Counted from the first letter of the stretch, positions 20,483 to 51,100 are shown. The stretch is 64,000 bases of DNA from Monocercomonoides exilis PA203 (GCA_001643675.2 LSRY02000017.1:1054001-1118000); one strand, 5' to 3'. Made by a program: numbers and translations. Notes: generated from the letters alone by a model not told the origin.

Positions 20483-21211
20483 TTATTTCTCGCTATCTAA
20501 AGAAAATTTAACTTCTTCGTCTTCGCAGCACTCCGTCCTTCCCTCACCAGTGAAATCAAGATCATCTGATCCATCTGAACTTTCATCTTCTGGTGGTGGA
20601 AGTAAACTTTGCATTTTTGAAACAAATTCAGAAGCTTTTATTGCTGAAATAGAATAAAAAAAATCAAAGCAGAAAAAAATGGTTGAAAGACGAATTATAA
20701 ATATATTTTTAAAAAAATGCTATATTTATATCACTAAACCATTTTCTTTTGATAAAATAAACCAATATAAAGAAGGATCGTTTTTAATTGAAAGATCAGA
20801 TGGAGACGACGATGTTTCCAAGTTTTCTTTTGGTTCGAACGCATTTTCTTTATTTTCTTCCTTCAAATGTGAATATGTTGGCACTACTTCTTCATCTTCA
20901 CTTTCGTCATCGTTGAAAATTTGAATAAATAAAGCAGATTGAATTTCAATGTCTTCTTTTAAAACTCCTTGAAGACAAATGTTTGAATAAAAAATTGTTA
21001 TTGGTTGAATGGTTGTGTGTGTCATTGCTCCGGAATTATCAACTGATTTGTGAAACCAGCACAATTTATCGTTTAATATTGTTAGACAACCTCTACCAAT
21101 TTTAGATTCTCGATTTCCGTGGCAACATTCAACATCATCAAACTCTAACGAATTTATTGAATCTTTATTATCCAAACTCAATTCAGAGTAGGTATTTTTT
21201 TCTATTTCCAT
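20483..21211 (-). CDS. CLNS1A: pICln / Voldacs-domain protein (methylosome subunit, Sm-ring assembly chaperone)
   Basis: Exons 21211-20740 and 20643-20483. GRGCLTILNDKLCWF...IFYSNICLQGV...ALFIQI-acidic patch...FVSKMQSLLPPPEDESSD follows the ICln pattern (GxLxIxxxxLxW, YPxIxLHA, LYxQL, acidic loop, QxLHPDPED). Confidence 0.75.
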
Positions 21212-23231: not shown

Positions 23232-24287
23232 TTATTCATCAGAATAATTAGAAGCATCCTCTCCGTCATCAACGCTATTTGAATCTTCTTCTTTTTCATC
23301 ATCACGCGGCCCATGCAGTATATCGTCAGCATCAGGAATTTCTTCATTTTCTGAAAAATCAATTTCTTCATCAGCAATAATGGATTTTTCTTCTGGAATA
23401 AAATGAATCATTTTTTGCAAAATATCAGCAAAACTTGGTTTAAGATTCCTTTGAACAAGCCACATGGATAAACAATCAGCAATGAATGTTTTCCTTACTC
23501 CATGCTTTGGAAAAAACGCTCTTCAATGACTCCACAACCCTTTAACGGAATTGGTGCAAGCACCTGTTTCTGGGTCTTTGAAGTTCCTTTTATGACAGAC
23601 CGTTATATGTTCATAACCAATATCTTTCAGACAATTATAGCTTTTCCATTCATCACTAATAATTGTTGTGCCTGCTAATATCCTTTCTTGAATAATAGGG
23701 ATCAATGTTTCTTTTTTCCTGTCTGGCACGATGATAACAAAATTTGTTCCAGCTCCTCCTCCTTCCTTCCTCTCAACTCCTCCGAAAATCCACAGCAAAT
23801 CCTTCTTTCTTCCTCTTCCATATTTCCTTCTCCTCCAAACAGCCTCATCTATTTCGACGTATTTTCCTGGTCCTCCTAATTTCGGCATCGTTTCGTTCCA
23901 AATTTGTGTACACGCACCTCTCACAACGCTTGTCCAGTAACCAATAGTTGGATATGAAACACCCGTCAGCAAATGAATTTGTTTTAATCCAATTCCAATC
24001 CAATAGTATAATAGAATCTGCAAAACTATATTTATTGGTAGTTTCATTTTGGAAGATACGGAATTTTTAAATATTGAGGTTTTTTTTCGGCAAGTTTGAC
24101 ACCAAAGATATTTGTAACCTTCTGTTTCCTCCCTGATTCTCCTTTTGCTTCTGCATTTAGGGCAATCCTTGGTAGCGAACTCTTGAAAACGTTTGAAAAA
24201 CCAATTCCACGTTTCTTCTTTATCATGGAAGATCATTTTCAATCGAAATACTGTTTGACTATTTTTTTCCTCTTCAGATCTTGCCAT
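23232..24287 (-). pseudogene. ISXO2-like DDE transposase with premature stop
   Basis: Zn ribbon CPKC...CQTC, HTH, VEIDE, WIFGGVER, TIISDEWKSY, HITVCH, NSVKGLWS. In-frame TGA at 23525-23523, after which the same frame continues RAFFPKHGVRK... to 23232. Confidence 0.9.
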
Positions 24288-24878
24288 TAAACTTTTTTAA
24301 TCATAAACCATAGATTAGAATTTTTTTGACTTTTCCATGTTTTTTTAAACTTCTAAAAAAGACTTTCCGTTAGCTGAAAATTTGCATATTGAATCAATAT
24401 ATAACGTAAATGACTTTCACTATTTTATTGTGCAAAATTGAGAGTTCCGATACACTTTCATTTTGCCTCAGTTGCATTGATCGTTATTATTTGACTTTTT
24501 CACAATAGTTCCCCTCTCATTGATGAAATATTCATAGTTTTTTTTTTGATATGGTTTATTCTTCTTTTATTTATTTTTGAATTCCTTTTGATCAAATTTT
24601 TAAGATGAATGCAATTGGAAAACTTTGTTTTTAATATGTGGAAAAAAACTAGAAAATATTTTTGAAACTTTTAGACTTTTTTTCACCAATATCTTTTTTT
24701 GCATTCAAACTGAATTTTTTCTGTTTTTGTTGAATTCCTGTTTCATTCCTGTTTCCATTAAGAATATCATCATATATATATATTGATGTTGTCGTTTCTT
24801 TCTTTTTGTCTTTACTTGAAAGAATTCTCTTCTTTTTAATGTTTTAAACCTTCTTTTTGTTGATGTGGTGATAAATCC

Positions 24879-36442: not shown

Positions 36443-37916
36443 GGCAAATGCATACTTAACGGCAATTTTAAAATTAATGAAAAAGCAGTTTATATATATA
36501 AAGCAAGTTATTTAGTGTATATATTATGAACAAAATAAGTGCGGAAACCATGATTTTTTGATTTTTGAAATCTATCGTTTTCACATATTTATGGGATTTT
36601 TGATCACTCAAAAATCAAAAATTTCATGGAAGAAGTGTCTGATTCAGACGATTCACTTGCTCTGCCTGGAAAACCTACAAACAAATTATTCAGATTGTTT
36701 CTCAATTCGGAGAAATCTGAAAAATGGATATTTTAGAAAAACATCAAAAACAAGCCAGAATGCAGAAGGCACAGAATTGAAATGGATTTACGGCGTTACT
36801 ATGGGAAGATGATGTGGGTTTGCAGAAAATGCAGCAATTGGAAATCAGTTTGCAAGAAAACATCCTTTTATCGAAGCAGGATATAAATAAATGTGATTTT
36901 GTTAATTATCCTCTTTATTTGGAATGGTGCTAGTGAAAATTTTTGCTCGGAAATGTTGGGAATTCATAGGAACTCTGTTGCATATTGGTCATCTGTTATG
37001 AGGTGTTGCGCAATGGACATCATAAATCAGAATGAAACTATTCTTTGATGTTAAAACATTAGTGTTAAAATAGATGAATATGTTTAAAGGAGAAGAAAAT
37101 AACATAGAGGAAAAAGAAAGAAACAAATGTTGGTCTTTGGTGCAGTGGAGCGAAAGAAAGATAAAATGGATGAAACAAAAAACTTTTTTGTCATGACTGT
37201 TCCAGACCGTTCAGTTTCGAAGTTGATTCCTATCATTCATAAGCACAATCTTCCGCATTCAACAATAATGTCAGATGAATGGAAGGCATATTCATCTCTT
37301 TCTCGTCTTGGACACAACCATCAAACAATGTTCCATAAAAGAAAATTTTATGATGAAGAAACTCACGCATGCACAAATACAATCGAAGGATTATGGAGCC
37401 ATATGAGAAGATTTTTTCCTCCCCATGGAATTCGAGAAATATTTGTTGCTGATCAGTTTGCTTTTTGGATGATTAATAAGAGAAAGATTGTGACATTTAA
37501 AGTATTTGTATCAAAAATTATTTTCAACAAAGAAAAATAAACAGAAGAAGCTGAAGAAGATGAAGAAACAGAAGAAACTGAAGAAGAAATACCTGATTTA
37601 GATGATTTACTTATTTCTAATGACAGCGAAACAAGTGAAACCGATAATATTGACCCAGGCGATGGTTTATCTGCCTCTGAGTATTCAGAAAACTCATAAA
37701 GATAAACTTTTTCATTTTATTTTGATTTTTTATTTTGTTTTTTTTATTTTTTAGAAAAAAATTTGACCCATTTTCATAATTTTTGAAAAATTAAAATTTT
37801 ATTTTAACGAACTTCCGCATGTTTTTATCTACTCAAAACATCACAAATGATGTTTATAAGCAATAATCAAACGAAACGTGCAAGAATTAGAAATTGCTGT
37901 TAAGTGTGCATATGCC
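36443..37916 (+). mobile_element. Second Merlin (IS1595/ISXO2-type) transposon, decayed
   Basis: TIR GGCAAATGCATACTTAACGGCAATTT versus reverse complement GGCATATGCACACTTAACAGCAATTT; internal transposase remnants; no matching TSD. Confidence 0.85.
36626..37699 (+). pseudogene. Fragmented ISXO2-like transposase
   Basis: VFGAVER, TIMSDEWKAY, CTNTIEGLWSHMRR in ORF 37127..37540; upstream KIDE and Zn-ribbon remnants broken by stops and frameshifts; acidic tail follows an in-frame TAA. Confidence 0.85.
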
Positions 37917-40552: not shown

Positions 40553-41997
40553 ATGTCTCAAATGCAATCACAAAAATCACCCAAAGATATTTTGCAATTA
40601 GTATTATCATATAAAGAAAGAGGAAAATCTGCTAAAGATTGTGTTGCTGAGTTAACCAACGATTTTGATGAAGATTATAAAACGGATAATCTTGAATCAG
40701 ACAACATGCAAGATGATGCAGACGAAAACAATCTTATGAAATCCTTAGATAATTTATCAAAAAACATTAATGATAAAATTCATCAAGTTGTAGACGACGC
40801 TCAACACTCTCCGGAACACTCTGATAATAATTTACCTGCTCAACAACAATTGTCAAACATACTTGATAAGCTGTATTTTTTTATGACTTCTATATGCGTT
40901 ATTCTTTTTGAGGTACTCTTCTTAATGTACAGTTTCTGTATCAAAAAAGAAAGCGGAATGGATTCACGCACAGTTATTTTAATGAATATATCATGCATGT
41001 TTTCATTAGTAAAGATATTTTCATTCTCCGCACAGATTTTTGAGCAGCTTACACACCACATCGTAAATCATGAGGCGAGACGAACTCTTTGGCCAGTTTA
41101 CACATATCTGCTGTGTATCATAAATGACTTCATATCTATTAAAACAATTATTAGCTTGTACAAGCAGAAGCACCTCTATGAGAGCAGAATATTATTTAAT
41201 CATAAGTTGCTCCAGATATTTAGAATTCTTGATATTTTGTTTAGCATAAAACAAATAAGGGATCTGGTTTGTTAGGTGAATTGTATTTTGTAGCATCACT
41301 TAAATTATTCAAACTCTCAGTTTAATAGAAATTATGAAAGTAGTCTATTGAAAAGAATTATTAAACGTTTGTCAGATGGGATTAGAAATCAATTACAGCT
41401 ACGAAATGTTTCACTTCTGGAATTAAGAAAATGTTTGCCATCATCTTGTATTTTTCCATGATTTTAATTTTTTTTCATCATTACTCTTTTTAAAAATTTC
41501 CCCTTCATCTTTCTTCCAATGTATTTTTCTGAATTTATAATGACATTTATATATACATTTTTTCCTTTCCTCATAAAAAGTCTTTTTCGAAATGACATTT
41601 CATCTCATATTTCTTGTGATACTGTACAAGAAATTATATCCCACTCATTTCATTATCAAACATCCATTCCATTGGGCCAATTTATTGCTATACACCATTT
41701 TTATTTCAGATTTATTTGTGAGAATATCACTCTTAAGAATGAGATCTGGATTGGTCTGCGATTCTTTTTATCAATTTTTTTCAAACTGCTTTTTCCTTCT
41801 TATTTATTAATATGTTTTAGGAACCTTTATTGATTCCAGCTATCTTTTGCAAAGGCATACCTGGAACTGTCTTTGCTTCCATTATTTCATTTTTCTTATC
41901 GCTTATACCAGATTGGGAACCCGAATTGACGTTCCATCCCAGAGTTGCAAATGCTCCTCAACCCACTGTTCAAGTGAACGATGAAGTTCAGGAATGA
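40553..41997 (+). CDS. Hypothetical multi-pass membrane protein (~400 aa)
   Basis: Exons 40553-41266, 41321-41447, 41581-41753, 41821-41997 join in frame across GT-AG introns; several hydrophobic segments. Confidence 0.65.
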
Positions 41998-42227
41998 ATC
42001 CGCGAATATCTGAATATTTGTTGAACTTATTTCAATTCATTCACACTTGAATAGCTTGTCTCATCTTTCTCCTTCTTTTGAAACATTGTTGAATAATACC
42101 TTTTTTACACAAAGAAATAAAAAGGGTACATTAACTTTTTGTTTTGTTTGCGTGTGATTTTTTTTATTAAATTGAATAATATATTGATTTTTTAATAATT
42201 TATTTGTTGTGAATTTTAGAATAACTT

Positions 42228-42747
42228 TCAAGTCATTCCTCTTGAACCATGCTAAATTTTAATAAAAATAAAAAAAAGATTATGCGAAAATCAAATTCAA
42301 AAATTTTAACATACTATTTTTCTTTCATAAAAGTCATCTGCCTTACTTGTTCCAATATTTATTATTTTGGGGCATCCTTCCCTGTCTTTTTCTTGCATCG
42401 TGCATTCTTTGCAATAATATGCATCAGCAACACCAGGTCCACCACAAATTACGCATCTGCCAGCATATGATCCATAGTTGCATTCATCGCAAATATGAAC
42501 CTAAATATCGAAAAATACGTTCAACACATTTTAAAAAAATATTTGTAAAACAAATACCAATGTAGTTGGTCTTGAGTATGAATCACAAATAACACAACGA
42601 CCGTCACATCCTTCGCACAATCTCCCAATAGCCGTTCCAGTTTGTTTTCTGCAAAACATTAAATCTGGATGATGTTTCTATTTTGAAAGATTAAAAATTT
42701 GTTATGTCAACAAAACATCTACAATTAATTCAAAAGCATACAGCCAT
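42228..42747 (-). CDS. PHF5A: PHD finger-like domain protein 5A / Rds3 (SF3b subunit, U2 snRNP)
   Basis: Missed by the ORF track. Four exons give MA|[40 protein letters not shown]|[62 protein letters not shown]|HGSRGMT*. Confidence 0.97.
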
Positions 42748-42956
42748 TTTCAATATAAATATATTTAATAAGAAAATTTGTGTTAACAAAATATATTACA
42801 CATGTTTCTGATCAATTAATTCAATATCTTTGTTGATTTTCAAATATTCTGCATATGTTTGTGCTGTTTTCATTTCAATCAAACTTTTGCATCAATTAAG
42901 CAGAAATGTGATCTGAAAACTAATTTAAAACAGAACTTGAATTTTATTAAAAATTC

Positions 42957-45151
42957 ATGACTAATACCCCAATTGGAAAATTTATTTTACCTCCAACAGA
43001 GGTCCAGACTTTGATTGAAAAAACAGCGCAATTTATTGCAGAAAAAGGAGCTTCATTCGAACAAAAACTTCTTGATGATCAAAAAGATAATCATCGTTTT
43101 GAATTTTTGAAACCCGAGTCTCAATATCATCAATTTTATGCGCACACGCTTCATCAAAAGATTGTCGAAGGAGGTATGAAAAATAGATTTATTTATTTGT
43201 ATTTTTTACGAAATGATTTCTTCATTTTATATTTGATATCTGTTTTAAAGCTTACAAGAAAGCGGGGCTTGAATCTGAAATTGTCAAAAAAGACAAGCAA
43301 AAAGTTATTTATTTTTATTTTTATAGGTTTAACGAAGCTTGTTGTCATTTCATTTTTAGGAAAAGAAGACAAGTCACACTGTTGAAAGGGCAGCTCAAAT
43401 TAGAAAAATTCCAAAGGAGGCACCCCCTCCATTTAGATTTGCTGTAGATCCTCCAAATCAAATCACTACTTTAGAATTGTTTGTTGTAAGTTTATTTTTT
43501 GACTTTATCAATATTATTTTTGATTGTGTTTTTTAGAGAACAAATAAAGTTAACTGCCTTGTTTGCTGCAAAAAATGGAATGCAATTCATTCAAAGCCTT
43601 CCAGAAAATGTTAAGGCAAGCCCTCAATTCGAATTTCTTCAGCCAAGCAGCACAAGGTACTTTTATTATCAGTCGCTAATTCAACAATACGAGATGTGTC
43701 TTCGCCCATCTCCAGAATGCCTCAAAAAAATAGACCTAGAAGCAGATTCAAAGTTTGCTTCTCAATTATTGTTCATTTAAAGAAAAGTTGATATTTTATT
43801 CCATTGTGAAAAAAATATTTTTTTTAATTTTAAATTTTAATTTTGAAATGAATGGTTATTTTTACAGATTCGCAATTTTTAAACGCATTCAAAAGCGAGC
43901 AGCGTGGGAGCGCTGGGCGGAAGAGACGAAGCAGCGGGACGCGCTTGCTGCGGAGGCAGAGCGAGACAACGAGGCTGCGCAGATTGATTGGCACGACTTT
44001 GTGGTTGTGGAGAGAGTTGTGTTTGACGACGACGAGGATGAGGATAAGGACAGGCAAAAAGAGAACAGCGGGCTTTTGAACTTGGGCGCTTCCACAGATG
44101 ACCACAACGCACACATAGGTGTGAAATTTCAAGCTGACACAAATGTTTTGTGCATGAAGGCAATGACTGTTTCGATGAGCCTTCTTCTTCTTCTTCTATT
44201 TTTTTATTTAAAAAATCAATTGCGTTGTTTCGAATGCAAATTTATTATTTTATTTTATTAATATTTTCTTTCTTTCTTTTTAACATTTTTTTTAAAAAAA
44301 AAACACATAATTCTATCAACTGTATTCATTTCCCCCCCCTATTTTTCACAGATTTCCTCGCATCTTCACTCGGAGGAGCGTCTATTGAAGGGCCGACATT
44401 TCAGCTGGGGCACGGCCGAGACGAGTCAGAAGACGTCGATATGGACATGGACATTGAGGAAAACGACGAGCAGCACCAGACAACATCCACTTCACACCCA
44501 CACACAGCCACATCATCATCATCTTCTTCTTCTTCATCTTCTGCTTCTTCTACTTCTGCTTCTTCTGCTGCAAATGCCACTCCTCTTTCGCGCGCCCACA
44601 CGCTCGCAGCAGCAGCCGCTGCGTCGCTGCGGATGGTGGTGTGCTCGTTCTGCGGGAAGGAGATTCCGGAGTCAGAGATCGACCAGCACATCAAAATGGA
44701 GATGAGCGACAGCACAGCCAGGCAGAAGCGCATACAGGCAATGAACAAGACAAAGGCCCTCTCTGCCTCGACGGGGGACGAAATCGCCATCTCGCTCCAG
44801 CGCTTCGCAGAGCGCAGGCCGGATATCTTTTCGAGCACAGGGAAGGAAAGCGCAGAGGAAAAGGCAGCGAGAGAAGCGAAGCTTGCTGAGGAGAGGAGGA
44901 TTGCACTGCAGAGAGAGGCTGGTGCCTGGGACGGAAGATTCGCTTCAAAGGCCACAGCCTCTTCAATTGCTCAATATCTTCCACAATCGTCTTCTTTCAC
45001 TCCAGATAAGCAGTTTGGACCGCAGATGGATGAGCAGCAACAATATATGCAGGAACCTCAAAAAAGACTGTTTGGAGATGGAATTCATCAAAATGGAATG
45101 AATCCTCAGTTTTCAAATTTGAATATGTCCAAGCGTACAAGAACAGAATGA
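42957..45151 (+). CDS. SF3A1: Splicing factor 3A subunit 1 / Prp21 (U2 snRNP)
   Basis: Two SURP domains (LIEKTAQFIAEKGASFEQKL...FEFLKPESQYHQFY; IKLTALFAAKNGMQF...PQFEFLQPS), AQIDWHDFVVVE, and LQRFAERRPDIF...WDG motifs across multiple introns. Confidence 0.95.
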
Positions 45152-45276
45152 TATATTTTGATTTAATAAATTTATTATTTATTTTTAAGTGTTTATTTTC
45201 AAGCATTTCAATAAAAAATTATCAGTTAATGATATTTTAAACTTTTTCATGGGATGATCAAAAGACAATTATTTTA

Positions 45277-47759
45277 ATGTCTCATTTGAGGGATGAAGAA
45301 GATGAATCATTAAATTTACCAGAAGGGAAACAAGGCACGCATTAAGAATTTTATTTTTAGATTTATTATATATGTGCTTTCTTTGCAACAAATATGATAC
45401 TCATATTTCATCGAAAAATATTTTTTAAAATTCAAAAGAGCGGATCATCGAATGTCCTTATATGGACACTATAAACAGATCAATTTTAAATTTTGATTTT
45501 GAAAAGTGTTGCTGTGTTACGTTATCTACAGTTAATGTTTATGCTTGTCTTGTGTGTGGAAAATATTTCCAAGGTTTGACACTATTTTTTGTTTATTAAT
45601 TATTTTTTGTTTACTATTTTGTACAACAGGAAGAAGCGAAAAAACACCTGCCTACTCTCATTCGCTACAAGCGGAACATCATGTTTTTATGAATATGAAA
45701 ACTTTGAAGGTTACATTTTTTTTTACATTTTTGGAAATTAAACTCTCTTATTTTTATACGATATTTAGGCTTATTGTCTTCCAGATGGATATGAAATCAT
45801 TGACGATTCTTTGAATGATATCAAAGTTTGTTGCAAATCATTTCGATTATTTATCTTTTTAACTTCAAAAATATCTGTCAGAGAGTTATACGCCCCCAGT
45901 TCAATATCGCATACATAACAGGATTGGAAAATGACATTCGTACGTGTCGTGCGTTGGATGGAACATTGTTTTATCCAGGTTACGTTGGCTTAAACAATAT
46001 TGATGGAAATGATCATGTTGCATGTGTAATTCATGTTTGAAATCTTTTTATTTCAAAATCCAATTGAAACAATCTTAATCATTTATATTGTTTGCAGGCA
46101 TTAGGACAGATTCCCCTATTTCGGAATTTTTTCTTGGATAATGATGTCTTTCGAATTGTATGCACTTGAGCAATATCCAAAACCATTTCAATATTTTCAA
46201 TTTTCCATGTTTTTTTTAATTTTAAATTTTTTGATAACAACTTCTTTGTCTCAACCAACGTATCGCAACATTCAGTTACATTCTCGGGCACAGCTTCCAG
46301 CGAGTGCACCCACACCTGAAGAAGCCGCGACTCGCCCTTCGCCCACCGTTGTATCACACGCCCTCTCAACGCTCCTGCGGCAGATGTGGTCTCCCTTCAA
46401 CTTCAAGTCCCACGTCTCTGCCCAGACATTCATTCACCTCGTCTCTCTCTTCCAGCCGTCTCTGATCACTTCACACTCATCTTCAACTTCATCTTCATCT
46501 TCATCCTCTTCCTCTTCCAGCTCGTCTTCTCGTGCCTCTTCCGCTGGCTTTGCTGCGATGTCCTCATCGTCAATTGCTCGCTCCTCCATCGCAGCGTCGG
46601 CAGACGAGCACCATTCACTTCCCCGTGACGCCCTTCGCTTCTTGCTGTGGCTGCTCAGCATTGTTGACTCAGAATGTGGGGATGTTATTTCGCCACAGAT
46701 GCAGCAGTCGTCCAAAGACGATTCTTCAAAACATCCAAATGAGAAGAAGAAGAAGAAGCAGGGTTTGTTGTTATTATTATCATTAAGGAATATTTCATTT
46801 TTTCCCACTTTGTTTAATGATAATAACAAATCAACTTTTTCTTCTGTGCGTTTGTCGTTGATTGTTGTTTAGGCATAATAAAGTCCAGCTTCCAAGGCTC
46901 ATTGAAAATAATAACACAGACACCATCCTCCTCCTCCACCTCATCTTCACCAGAATCTCAATCATCGTCATCATCTCCTTCTTCTTCTCCCTCTTCTTCC
47001 TCCTCTCCCTCTTCCTCCTCCTCTTCATCAACTGACACTTCGACCAAAACCACACAACACAAGCCATTTTTAGTGCTCACCCTCGATCTCCCTCCCATCC
47101 CTCTCTTCCCAGTCGACGAGGACGACGAGGAGAGCCACAGCGGCGTGACGTCCACGCAGGCCGGCATTCAGCAGGTGCCTCTTCCCATTCTGCTGGAGAA
47201 GTACTCAGGCAAATTCATTCCTGTTGTCCCTGTGTCTGCTGTGGGGACGTCGGCTTCTCTTCCTCTCGCAGAAACACCCACGAGGTCAATGAAGATTACG
47301 AAGTTCCCTCCGTTTCTCATACTCCACTTCAACAGATTTATTAAGAACCAGTTTTTCTATGAAAAGAACCCGACGCTTGTGACTTTCCCGATTTCTGGGC
47401 TTAATTTGGCTGAATGTTTGATTAATTTTATTTTTTTAATCTTCAAATAATTTTTTTCATTAACATAATTATTATTTAGATGGACTGTGCAATGAACGAA
47501 TTATATACGATTTAATAGCTTCAATATCACACGAGGGCTCAATTCAAGATGGTAAATATATTGTGCATGTTTATAAGCCAGTTTGTTCAAAAAGCTAATT
47601 AAATAATTTTTCACAATTTTCTTTTAAAAAAAATTAACTTTTGAATAGTCTGTAAAGCAATGGTTTTCGATTGAAGGACTTGTTGTTGAAGAAGTCTTGC
47701 CACAAACAGTTATGCTATCATCTGCCTTCATTCAGATATACCAAAAAAGACCTTTATGA
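45277..47759 (+). CDS. USP39: U4/U6.U5 tri-snRNP-associated protein Sad1 / USP39 (inactive USP family)
   Basis: CPYMDTINRSILNFDFEKCCCVTLSTVNVYACLVCGKYFQG (ZnF-UBP), PGYVGLNNIDGND (Asp at the catalytic Cys position), LRQMWSPFNFKSHVS, PFLVLTLDLPPIPLF, FFYEKNPTLVTFP; many introns. Confidence 0.95.
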
Positions 47760-47916
47760 AGAAAGAAAACTTTTTCGATTTGCGAAAAAGATTTATAAAT
47801 CTTTTTTATTATAAATTTAATAAGATTAAAAATAATTGAAAATTTATTTGCATATTTAAAAATTCAAAATACTTTTCATTTTGATCACAACCATATTTTG
47901 ATTATCAAAAACTGAA

Positions 47917-47924
47917 TATAAAAG
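47917..47924 (+). promoter_or_regulatory. Possible TATA box ~30 nt upstream of U4 snRNA
   Basis: TATAAAAG begins 32 nt before the predicted U4 5' end; the AT-rich background makes this weak. Confidence 0.35.
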
Positions 47925-47948
47925 AAAAGCGTTGGAAAGATCAAATTT

Positions 47949-48088
47949 ATCCTTGCGCTTGGGGCAATTGTTCGGCTATGATCTTGTTGAGCCTTACATA
48001 TTGCTGGTTGAAAACTATACCCAATGCCCGCGGTACGACACGAAATGTGTCGGACTGCAATTTTTGGAAGCTGTCTTTCATGGCAGCA
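47949..48088 (+). ncRNA. U4: U4 spliceosomal snRNA
   Basis: 5' ATCCTTGCGCTTGGGGCA (U4/U6 stem II), 5' stem-loop with kink-turn GGC-TAT-GA...GA-GCC closed by GCAAT/ATTGC, TGCTGGTTGAAAACT (stem I and conserved linker), central hairpin GCGGT-CGACAC/GTGTCG-ACTGC, Sm site AATTTTTGG (48059-48067), terminal hairpin GCTGTC/GGCAGC. Confidence 0.93.
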
Positions 48089-48185
48089 TAAGCTTACGTT
48101 CTATCTGTTAATAGAAATTGCTTTGAATGAATCAATTTATTTTATTTAAAAAAAAAAATAATGATAATAATAAAGGAATTATCAA

Positions 48186-51100
48186 TCAGAATAAACAAAA
48201 TCTTTGTTGAAGTAAAGTAATAAAAACACTAACAGAAATTCTCAAGCAATTTTTTGTATAAGAATCAGAAGCGGATGTATCGTCATCTTTATAAATAATG
48301 TTTAATAACTGCTGAAGGACCAATGACACCCTGAAATGAATGTATGGGTGGATGGTATTTCTTTTTGTCCTCTCAGCAATTTTGAAGGTATTAACAGAAG
48401 ATTGGTGAGTAAGATATATGTTTGAACGAGATGAAGAATTTGGTGGGAGAAGAATGAAGGGAAAAAGTGATATGAATGTCAGAAGGATCACGTTTTGAGA
48501 CAGAAAAGGGGAGAATATGACTGAATGAATGGAGATATTGCCTGAAAAATGATGCATTTCGCTCCAAAATGGCCAAGTCACAATGTGAAATGCTGCCGGA
48601 TTGTTGTTACTCAGCCAATTTAAGAGTGAGAACAGGCAAGTCGGACACAGAGTGTTGTGAAAGAGAGAAGAAACAGTCACGTTCTTTGCGTCCAGGCATC
48701 TTTGCATGCACTCACACGATTCTTGGAATAGAGTTGAAGGAGGGTTGATTGGCTGAGGAAGTGGACGATCCATTGAAGATTTATCCTTCTCTTTGGGTTT
48801 TAATAGCTCTGCTGGTATTGTTGGAGGAGCAACAAGAATTTCCAAGCTCACACCAGGCGGATTGAAAGAGTTGATAACGCCTCCTTCCCCAGACACCCTT
48901 CCTGCAACAGCTGACCCTCTGATAAATCTTGACTTGGCTTCCACAATTCTCTCTTTCGTCACTTTTTCATCGTTGCTCTGTTTGTCATCTTCTGTTGAAT
49001 CAGCATTAATCTCTTCAATGAGAGGTCTTGTCTTCACAGTAATAGCTTCATCTTTTTTCTCATCTGACACAATTTTCTCTTCTTGTTTCAAGCTTTGCCT
49101 ATCCGCAATTTCATTCAGCGTCTCTGCATCATACTCGAATATAAACTTTTCCCTCTCTGTCTTCTCATTCCTGCAGATGGCTCTTTTATTCGCTGTGATG
49201 TTGTCTTCACGCATCGGCCCGCCAGCCCACGTGAACAGCCTCTCATTGCAGAAGAGATGGAGCGAGCGAATGCGTTTTTGAACGAAAGGACACAGACGCT
49301 TTGAAAGAGGAAGAGAAGAAGCAGCACGCGAAGAGGAAGGAAGGCTGAGTGGGAAGTGTTCTTGGCAGTCGCAGAGTAAGATGGGGCAGTGTGTGCTGGA
49401 TTGGGAAAGGGAAGAAGAAGAAGAAGAAGAAGAAGAAGAAGATAATGAGGAGGAGGAGGAAGAAGAAGAAGACAAAGAAGAAGAAACAGAAATAACTTTC
49501 AACACATTTCTATCCTTCCCTCTTCCTCTTCCTCTTCCCTTGCCTCTGCTAAGAGCTCCACAGTGCAGCGACGACGACGCCACCTCAAGGAACAGGATGT
49601 GCGAAGGGTGTGGAGGGATCTGCGGGTAGAACAACTTCTGTGTGAAGAGAGAGGAATTACTATGGATAGACTCAAGAAGAGACGCAGAGTCAGCCAGCTT
49701 CTCGTTCAGCAGCAGGAACAGGATATTCAGCAGAAATGCGACTGACTTGTCGGTCGAGGAAAGCGGAGGAGAAGAAGAGGAAGGGACGACAAGAAGAGGT
49801 TTCTTTGTCATTTTCAATGCTCCTCCACTTTCTTCTGTTGAATACATTTGCTCCTCTGTCATTTCACTTATCTCCCTCAATCTCTCTGATACTTCCATTG
49901 TTTCGTCTGGCACACTTGAAACATCACTCAGATCGGGTGAGTGAGCAGCCAGCAGTGCGAGAAGAACAGGAAGGAGCTCTTCTTTCAGGCGGGCGAGGAC
50001 GAAGGAGCTGCAGCGAGTGATGAAATAGTTAAGCAATTGAGTGAGAGAGGAAGAATATTGAGAAGAAGAAGGAAGAGAAGAGAAGACAGAAGAAGAGGAG
50101 GGAGAAGAAGAAGATGATGATGATAAAGAAATTGATGATGAACCACTCATCACGCCCAACCCTCCCTGCCCTGCATCTCCACCTGACACAAAGACACCTC
50201 TAAACAGCAGAGAAAGAGGAAGAGCTCCTCCGTTGAGGTCACACCCAGTCTGCACTGCACCCGACAGCATCATCCTCAGCGTCGATATCATCGGTGCCCA
50301 CAGCAAATGGACGCTGTTCAGAAAGAGAGGGTGATGCGGAGGCTCAATTATCTGCTCTGATGGTGATGGTGTTGATGAGCTTTTGGTTTGTTCTTGTTTT
50401 TCTTTTTCTTTTTCTTTTTCTTTTTCTTTTTCTTTTTCTTTTTCTTCCTCTTTGTTTCTTCTGCTTCTGATACTTCCACTGCTATTTCTACTGTTACTGC
50501 TGTTACTATTATTGCTATTGCTTTTATTGCTTCCATTTCCCTCTGGCAGATTCAGCTCCATCATCTGCAGCGCCCAATATGCCGTGCTCAGTGCTGCTCC
50601 TTTGCACCTCCCTTTCATCCTTCTGTTCCGATCGTCCTCTTCCATCTGCATCTGCCGCTCTGCTTCTTCCTCTTCTCTGCTCCTCTCTTTCTCCCACGGC
50701 TCTCTTCCCATCATGCCTTCATCTCTTCCTCCTCTTCCTCCTCTTCCTCTTCCTCCTTCTCCTTCTCCTTCTTCTCCTCTCAAAACCAACCTCTGTCTGC
50801 TGGATGACCAGCTCCCACAGAAAGGCACAGCCATCTTCACAACATGCCTTGCTATCGTCGTCAGCTCCACAAGAAGCGCATTGTGACGACAGAACTGCTT
50901 CACTGACTGCTCTTCGTCTGTGTCTTTGGAACTAGACGCGGCTAAGAGACGACGTTCTTCTTCTTCTTCGGATTCGTTGTCATCTTCTGATGCTTCTTCA
51001 TCTGGTTCTTCTCCTTCTTTCTCTTTCTCTTTCTCTTTCTCCTTCTTTTTCCTCTTCTCTTTCTCCTTCTTTCTTCTTCTCTTCTTCTCCTCTCTCTCCT

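Follow-up and report, generated by a model that had tools for sequence, protein, structure and literature searches.

Genes that are co-expressed, or whose products belong to the same complex, reportedly form clusters of neighbours in eukaryotic genomes, as Teichmann and Veitia and also Hurst, Pal and Lercher are said to have described in 2004. Here we describe a locus of Monocercomonoides exilis in which the genes for four spliceosomal components, PHF5A, SF3A1, USP39/Sad1 and the U4 small nuclear RNA (snRNA), are immediate neighbours; it lies in a window of 64,000 nucleotides (contig C11:1,054,001-1,118,000 of the 82.3-Mb, 101-contig M. exilis assembly), which is the whole stretch of DNA that we analysed. 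PHF5A (a part of SF3b) and SF3A1 (a part of SF3a) are proteins of the U2 small nuclear ribonucleoprotein (snRNP), and Sad1/USP39 and U4 belong to the U4/U6.U5 tri-snRNP. Head-to-head gene pairs that include a splicing gene have been documented, among them the conserved fungal pair eIF4A-III/PRP9 and the human pair PLEKHJ1/SF3A2 (PMC2871058). Like these bidirectional-promoter pairs, PHF5A and SF3A1 are divergent, with starts only 209 bp apart and with both genes encoding housekeeping subunits of the U2 snRNP, whereas the known conserved head-to-head pairs rarely comprise two subunits of one snRNP. Unlike those conserved pairs, the PHF5A/SF3A1 pair is not kept in the related oxymonad Streblomastix strix, and the two genes are here only candidates for promoter sharing. 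The arrangement of the four genes is statistically unusual, and nothing in our analysis shows selection for it or co-regulation by it.

Four contiguous spliceosomal genes

The PHF5A gene on the minus strand and the SF3A1, USP39/Sad1 and U4 genes on the plus strand are contiguous at window positions 42228-48086, in less than 6 kb and with no gene interposed. A preliminary description of this DNA had claimed the adjacency of the four genes, their order and tight spacing, the absence of any unrelated gene among them and their lack of homology to one another; the adjacency, order and spacing are borne out by Rfam and Pfam matches and by the coordinates, with two gene ends uncertain, the interior is indeed free of other genes, and the non-homology is supported. 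The spacers are exactly 209 bp from the start codon of PHF5A to that of SF3A1 and exactly 189 bp between the USP39 stop codon and U4, both as had been described, and 125-310 bp between SF3A1 and USP39. For the exon models, splice sites were read by eye from the genomic sequence and phases were checked arithmetically, and homology searches were carried out exon by exon. Four RNA sequencing runs were found to contain 40-44% of the exonic sequence words.

The PHF5A gene (SF3b14b/Rds3; 42228-42747, minus strand) begins with an ATG at 42747, and its predicted exons (42747-42742, 42677-42558 and 42500-42315) are followed either by read-through to a stop codon at 42306-42308 or by an exon at 42251-42228. 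The gene end at 42228 given earlier therefore stands only with a 63-nt terminal intron, and falls if the stop at 42306-42308 is used. The PHF5 profile (PF03660) matches two exons at 47.7 and 92.2 bits, and these two exons span profile positions 10-45 and 43-103 of 104, thus covering the Cys-rich domain. Exon 3 and animal PHF5A share 84% identity, and the gene is single copy, being the sole PHF5 locus in the genome.

The SF3A1 gene (Prp21, a SF3a subunit of the U2 snRNP; 42957-45151, plus strand) runs from an ATG at 42957 to a stop codon at 45149-45151 in six predicted exons (42957-43173, 43251-43303, 43360-43489, 43539-43752, 43868-44118 and 44352-45151), whose phases close, by arithmetic only, to 554 codons plus the stop. 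Its architecture is that of SF3A1, with two Surp modules at 62.6 and 55.4 bits and the PRP21_like_P domain on exons 5 and 6; paired Surp modules occur at no other locus in the genome, and no ubiquitin-like C-terminus was seen in the SF3A1 model. Exon 6, which is the longest, gave no match in a set of 5.8 billion proteins, probably owing to the length range that the search accepts. Elsewhere in the genome we noted five Surp-module matches with identical scores, in frames of 282-1,488 amino acids (C68:207489, C82:6347, C7:1507610, C59:169362 and C59:206471), which represent a gene or element that has a SURP domain and is present in several copies.

The USP39/Sad1 gene (45277-47759, plus strand) is identified by a Pfam match to the UCH domain, which gives the expected UCH fold, and by library orthologues, to whose contigs its exons were matched one by one by tblastn. 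Searched against 1.84 billion representatives, it is closest to proteins that bear the name ‘U4/U6.U5 tri-snRNP-associated protein 2’, with one from S. strix at the top. Nine exons are predicted (45439-45573, 45630-45709, 45769-45825, 45882-46034, 46098-46157, 46276-46762, 46873-47415, 47480-47580 and 47649-47759), the last ending in the stop codon at 47757-47759. The start is less clear: the reading frame of the ATG at 45277 meets an in-frame stop at 45343 with no GT donor before it, and an in-frame join to the next exon requires a GC-AG intron with the donor GCACGC at 45335; an alternative start is the methionine codon at 45462. The spacer of 125 bp after SF3A1 that had been reported is thus correct if the ATG at 45277 is used by way of the GC donor, and becomes 310 bp with the later start. 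In the Cys box (GLNNIDGNDH, translated from exon 45882-46034) an Asp replaces the catalytic Cys, and the protein would therefore be catalytically dead, as is USP39/Sad1. A search for the N-terminal zf-UBP domain of USP39 gave a sub-threshold match (E=0.16) on one 44-amino-acid exon, the domain being split across three exons that were searched singly.

The U4 gene (47949-48086, plus strand) is a full-length match to RF00015 (model positions 1-138) at 83.3 bits, compared with a gathering score of 46. It is the only Rfam family found in the whole window, and the only U4 copy detected in the assembly. At position 111 the RNA has a Sm site, AAUUUUUGG, and the segment AUCCUUGCGC at the 5' end is perfectly complementary to GCGCAAGGAU of the single U6 gene; the predicted U4/U6 duplex has an energy of -54.1 kcal/mol, compared with -35.7 +/- 4.0 for shuffled sequences.

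Chance expectation and conservation of the run

If spliceosomal genes were placed in random order, a run of four would not be expected. M. exilis has 115 spliceosomal proteins (Hudson et al., PMC6679479), and its long-read assembly holds 18,152 genes with a mean length of 2,730 bp and a mean intergenic distance of 1,855 bp (PMC8767320). With 121 genes in the class (the 115 proteins and six snRNA genes) among 18,158 genes, we expected 0.8 adjacent pairs, 5e-3 runs of three and 3.6e-5 runs of four, in agreement with simulation. More generous nulls raise the expected number of runs of four to 6.5e-4, for a class of 250 genes, or to 1e-3, if the genes are confined to 6,000 ‘island’ genes. By this check the run is unlikely to be a chance product, with about 3.6e-5 runs expected and at most about 1e-3 under the generous nulls, and it is unusual for the genome even when some tens of comparable gene classes are allowed for; it is less striking once its post-hoc choice from very many scanned windows is counted. 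The ordering of the genes by sub-complex, which had also been claimed, carries no statistical weight, since two of the six possible AABB orders are sorted.

Spliceosome genes show no general tendency to cluster in the M. exilis genome. We located 28 other spliceosomal loci (15 LSM-domain loci, SF3A2, SF3A3, SF3B1, SF3B2, PRP3, PRP6, PRP8, PRP31 and five snRNA genes, namely U1, two U2, U5 and U6), none of which is on contig C11 and the closest two of which are separated by 146 kb. The number of pairs no more than about 150 kb apart is two, compared with 1.4 expected at random, which matches random placement. Similarly, no recognisable splicing gene adjoins U1, either U2, U5 or U6; U6 adjoins a gene similar to TRIP4/ASC-1, and the neighbours of the other snRNA genes encode proteins without Pfam domains. 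Contig C20 (1.34 Mb) holds U5, PRP3, PRP6 and one U2 copy at spacings of 178-540 kb, a concentration with a binomial p of about 0.001 before correction for some 100 contigs, which may be a loose regional enrichment or chance.

To determine whether the linkage extends to relatives, we compared the locus with contigs from one related oxymonad, S. strix (L017, L023 and L019), and with three USP39-bearing eukaryote contigs (L020, L021 and L022). The linkage is not conserved in this set. On the two S. strix contigs that carry PHF5A there is no SF3A1, the longer having been checked for 4.7 kb upstream and 2.7 kb downstream, and on both of them the gene upstream of PHF5A has the same orientation as PHF5A and no known function. 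The S. strix contig with USP39 has no U4, and a TADA2A-like gene lies 110 bp past the USP39 stop codon; neither SF3A1 nor U4 is present on L020, L021 or L022. The neighbours on the compared contigs have no match elsewhere in the window, and thus microsynteny is absent generally and the cluster can at most be a feature of the Monocercomonoides lineage alone. On a further eukaryote contig (L018, Logan SRR9302960), PHF5A is arranged tail to tail with a gene that has a ubiquitin-like domain and a UCH domain; we rejected this as PHF5A-UCH synteny, because a UCH gene with a ubiquitin-like N-terminus is USP14-like and not USP39.

Transcription units and the readings of the locus

We aligned the six snRNA genes (U1, U2a, U2b, U4, U5 and U6) at their first base, and found that all six have a motif resembling a proximal sequence element (PSE) near -66, GATCWNNNCCAT, followed by a TATA element near -32. 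In U4 these are GATCACAACCAT at 47883-47894 (-66) and TATAAA at 47917-47922 (-32), both on the plus strand. The spacing from PSE to TATA is exactly 34 nt in U1, U2a, U2b, U4 and U5, and 39 nt in U6. A 3' box (ATCTGTT ... TGAATGA), which in U4 is at 48103-48130 on the plus strand and is shared with U1, U2a, U2b and U5, lies 10-45 nt past the 3' end of each snRNA gene other than U6, which ends in a T-run instead. The combined PSE and TATA pattern has a single match in the window (47883-47922), compared with 0 expected, and 16 matches in the genome, compared with 0 for a reversed control; the 11 other genome matches to the relaxed pattern have neither an Rfam match nor a 3' box and were treated as background. 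The PSE, TATA and 3' box of U4 are the same as those of the dispersed U1, U2 and U5 genes, which marks U4 as an autonomous transcription unit. Its predicted promoter and terminator both lie inside the spacers, and on these elements the unit is independent. From the same signals we infer a polymerase for each snRNA gene, which for U4 would be RNA polymerase II.

A useful by-product of the analysis is a first description of the promoter and 3' box of M. exilis snRNA genes, which can be used to seek other small-RNA genes. As in plants, with an upstream sequence element and TATA, and in animals, with a PSE and a 3' box, the snRNA genes of M. exilis are flanked by an element similar to a PSE, a TATA near -30 and a 3' box, but the sequence of the element, GATCWNNNCCAT, is lineage-specific. 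As in plants, the distance from the element to TATA differs between U6 and the other genes; it is 5 nt longer in the U6 gene of M. exilis, whereas in plant U6 genes it is about 10 nt shorter. The spacing looks like a code for the choice of polymerase, as in plants but of opposite sign. The two U2 genes, which have identical scores (C20:1129252 and C36:753030), lie inside a duplicated segment, which also includes a protein gene downstream (EALYLLASC...SLIDQI...) and other similar open reading frames (ORFs).

The protein genes of the locus are each followed by polyadenylation signals of the two kinds used in M. exilis, AAUAAA and AAAUAA (PMC8767320). The hexamers lie 14-71 nt past the stop codon: AATAAA at 45165 and 45210 for SF3A1, AAATAA at 47830 for USP39, some 50 nt upstream of the U4 promoter element, and hexamers at 42204/42205 and 42168 for PHF5A. 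They suggest separate mRNA ends for PHF5A, SF3A1 and USP39. On the other side of the start codons, the AT-rich spacer at 42748-42956 is a candidate bidirectional promoter, the 209 bp between the two ATGs being well within the 1 kb that delimits a divergent pair. It is plausible from this geometry that PHF5A and SF3A1 share a promoter, and they are the only pair in the cluster that could. The 209-bp spacer and the spacer upstream of USP39 have no k-mer in common that is longer than in shuffled controls; shared upstream motifs, which the preliminary description had put forward as a check, were thus not detected between the promoter-bearing spacers.

The locus had been proposed to be expressed in an operon-like manner or by read-through, such that SF3A1, USP39 and U4 would come from one polycistronic transcript, with U4 processed from the 3' region of USP39. 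Indeed, the three genes are co-oriented and are separated by only 125-310 bp and 189 bp, and the mean 3' untranslated region (UTR) of this species, 312 nt (the 5' mean is 62 nt; PMC8767320), exceeds either spacer. In being co-oriented, tightly spaced and functionally related they resemble the genes of operons in nematodes, kinetoplastids and tunicates, and of green-algal bicistrons. However, a single promoter does not fit the internal PSE and TATA of U4, which are at fixed positions and, like its 3' box, match those of the dispersed snRNA genes, and poly(A) hexamers follow the stop codons of both SF3A1 and USP39. Unlike eukaryotic operons, then, the locus has an apparently independent promoter and terminator for U4 and predicted poly(A) signals between its genes; no sign of spliced-leader trans-splicing or of spanning transcripts emerges from this analysis of the DNA. 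Polycistronic transcription is also unmentioned in the M. exilis genome paper that was searched (PMC8767320). Together with the lack of conserved linkage, these features make a polycistron very improbable, and we do not uphold the proposal.

The run, being improbable under random order, might instead mark a selected co-expression neighbourhood, in which the genes keep separate transcripts and the dosage of U2 snRNP and tri-snRNP components, including that of the single-copy U4, is held in balance by a common chromatin domain together with a bidirectional promoter. The head-to-head position of PHF5A and SF3A1 would fit such an arrangement, as would spacers that all have about one tenth of the mean length in the genome, the finding that each of the four genes is single copy or the only copy detected, and the existence in fungi of conserved divergent pairs with splicing genes, such as eIF4A-III/PRP9 (PMC2871058). 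On the other hand, the cluster is absent in S. strix, no other spliceosomal loci are clustered, the promoter spacers have no common motif and the U4 promoter is of a completely different type, so that selection of this kind seems to us possible but doubtful. A more specific form of the idea, that this is a regulatory neighbourhood selected in Monocercomonoides alone, in which a single-copy snRNA gene is kept beside the gene for a protein of its own snRNP and next to a divergent U2 snRNP pair, with shared chromatin balancing their output, appears unlikely.

We think that each of the four genes is probably a transcription unit of its own within a gene-dense island of the kind typical of M. exilis, whose genome includes densely packed regions where the UTRs of gene models overlap (PMC8767320). 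With four such units, U4 would be an autonomous snRNA gene that starts from its own PSE and TATA and ends at its own 3' box, and PHF5A, SF3A1 and USP39 would each use their own poly(A) signals; the candidate bidirectional promoter region could couple the expression of the two U2 snRNP subunits. The four genes would have been assembled in the Monocercomonoides lineage, or else an older arrangement would have been lost in Streblomastix. Some observations weigh against this view. Poly(A) hexamers occur about 0.8 times per 100 nt in the AT-rich DNA here, which makes them weak evidence for transcript ends; SF3A1 and USP39 may be co-transcribed; and the low expectation for a run of four makes pure chance uncomfortable, unless a post-hoc search over gene classes and genomes is counted.

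Flanking genes and comparison with known systems

The cluster is extended by neither flank. On the 3' side of U4, and convergent with it, is a TTI1-like gene of about 2,540 amino acids on the minus strand, whose stop codon and the 3' end of U4 are only 99 bp apart (window 48087-48188). Its minus-strand poly(A) hexamers are beside the U4 3' box, and the ends of the two convergent units must therefore be separated by no more than a few tens of bases. On the PHF5A side are a 243-amino-acid ORF at 40553-41272 and Sec61-alpha; neither that ORF nor possible minus-strand exons at 41.3-42.1 kb yielded a Pfam identity, and thus they do not extend the cluster. At 41300-42100 the minus strand is open over short intervals that have plausible splice sites, as in ...IRGFIPELHRSLEQWVEEHLQLWDGTSIRVPNL with GTATAAG after it, which suggests a small gene just 3' of PHF5A.

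Further away, a gene for pICln had been placed about 21 kb upstream, and we could not confirm it. The candidate ORF (20729-21211, minus strand) gave no Pfam match even with a cut-off of E<=1, and a set of 5.8 billion proteins contains no homologue from any species other than M. exilis; its sole homologue is ‘uncharacterized protein MONOS_17450 [Monocercomonoides exilis]’, which is 99% identical, and the pICln label was based on loose motif resemblance alone. Two fragments of IS1595/ISXO2-like DDE transposases (23526-24296, minus strand, and 37103-37537, plus strand) lie inside AT-rich gaps of the window.

If selection for the neighbourhood were real, the locus would be a protein-plus-RNA ‘machine cluster’ of a type not described for the spliceosome, and a rare eukaryotic linkage, for dosage balance, of genes whose products serve different parts of a single RNA-protein machine, its RNA included; it would also offer a simple system in which to test for co-regulation of neighbours, in a protist whose snRNA genes are single copy. 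On present evidence it is mainly a well-documented curiosity. Like the eukaryotic clusters of neighbouring genes for the same complex, it brings together non-homologous genes that are adjacent beyond what random order would give, each with what would be its own transcript. The published clusters of that type are mostly pairs, whereas here a run of four includes a snRNA gene and is isolated in its genome rather than part of a genome-wide trend. We therefore regard the cluster, for which a function is only proposed, as a new and unusually long instance, with a snRNA gene among its members, of the known non-random pairs and clusters of neighbouring eukaryotic genes (PMC2871058).

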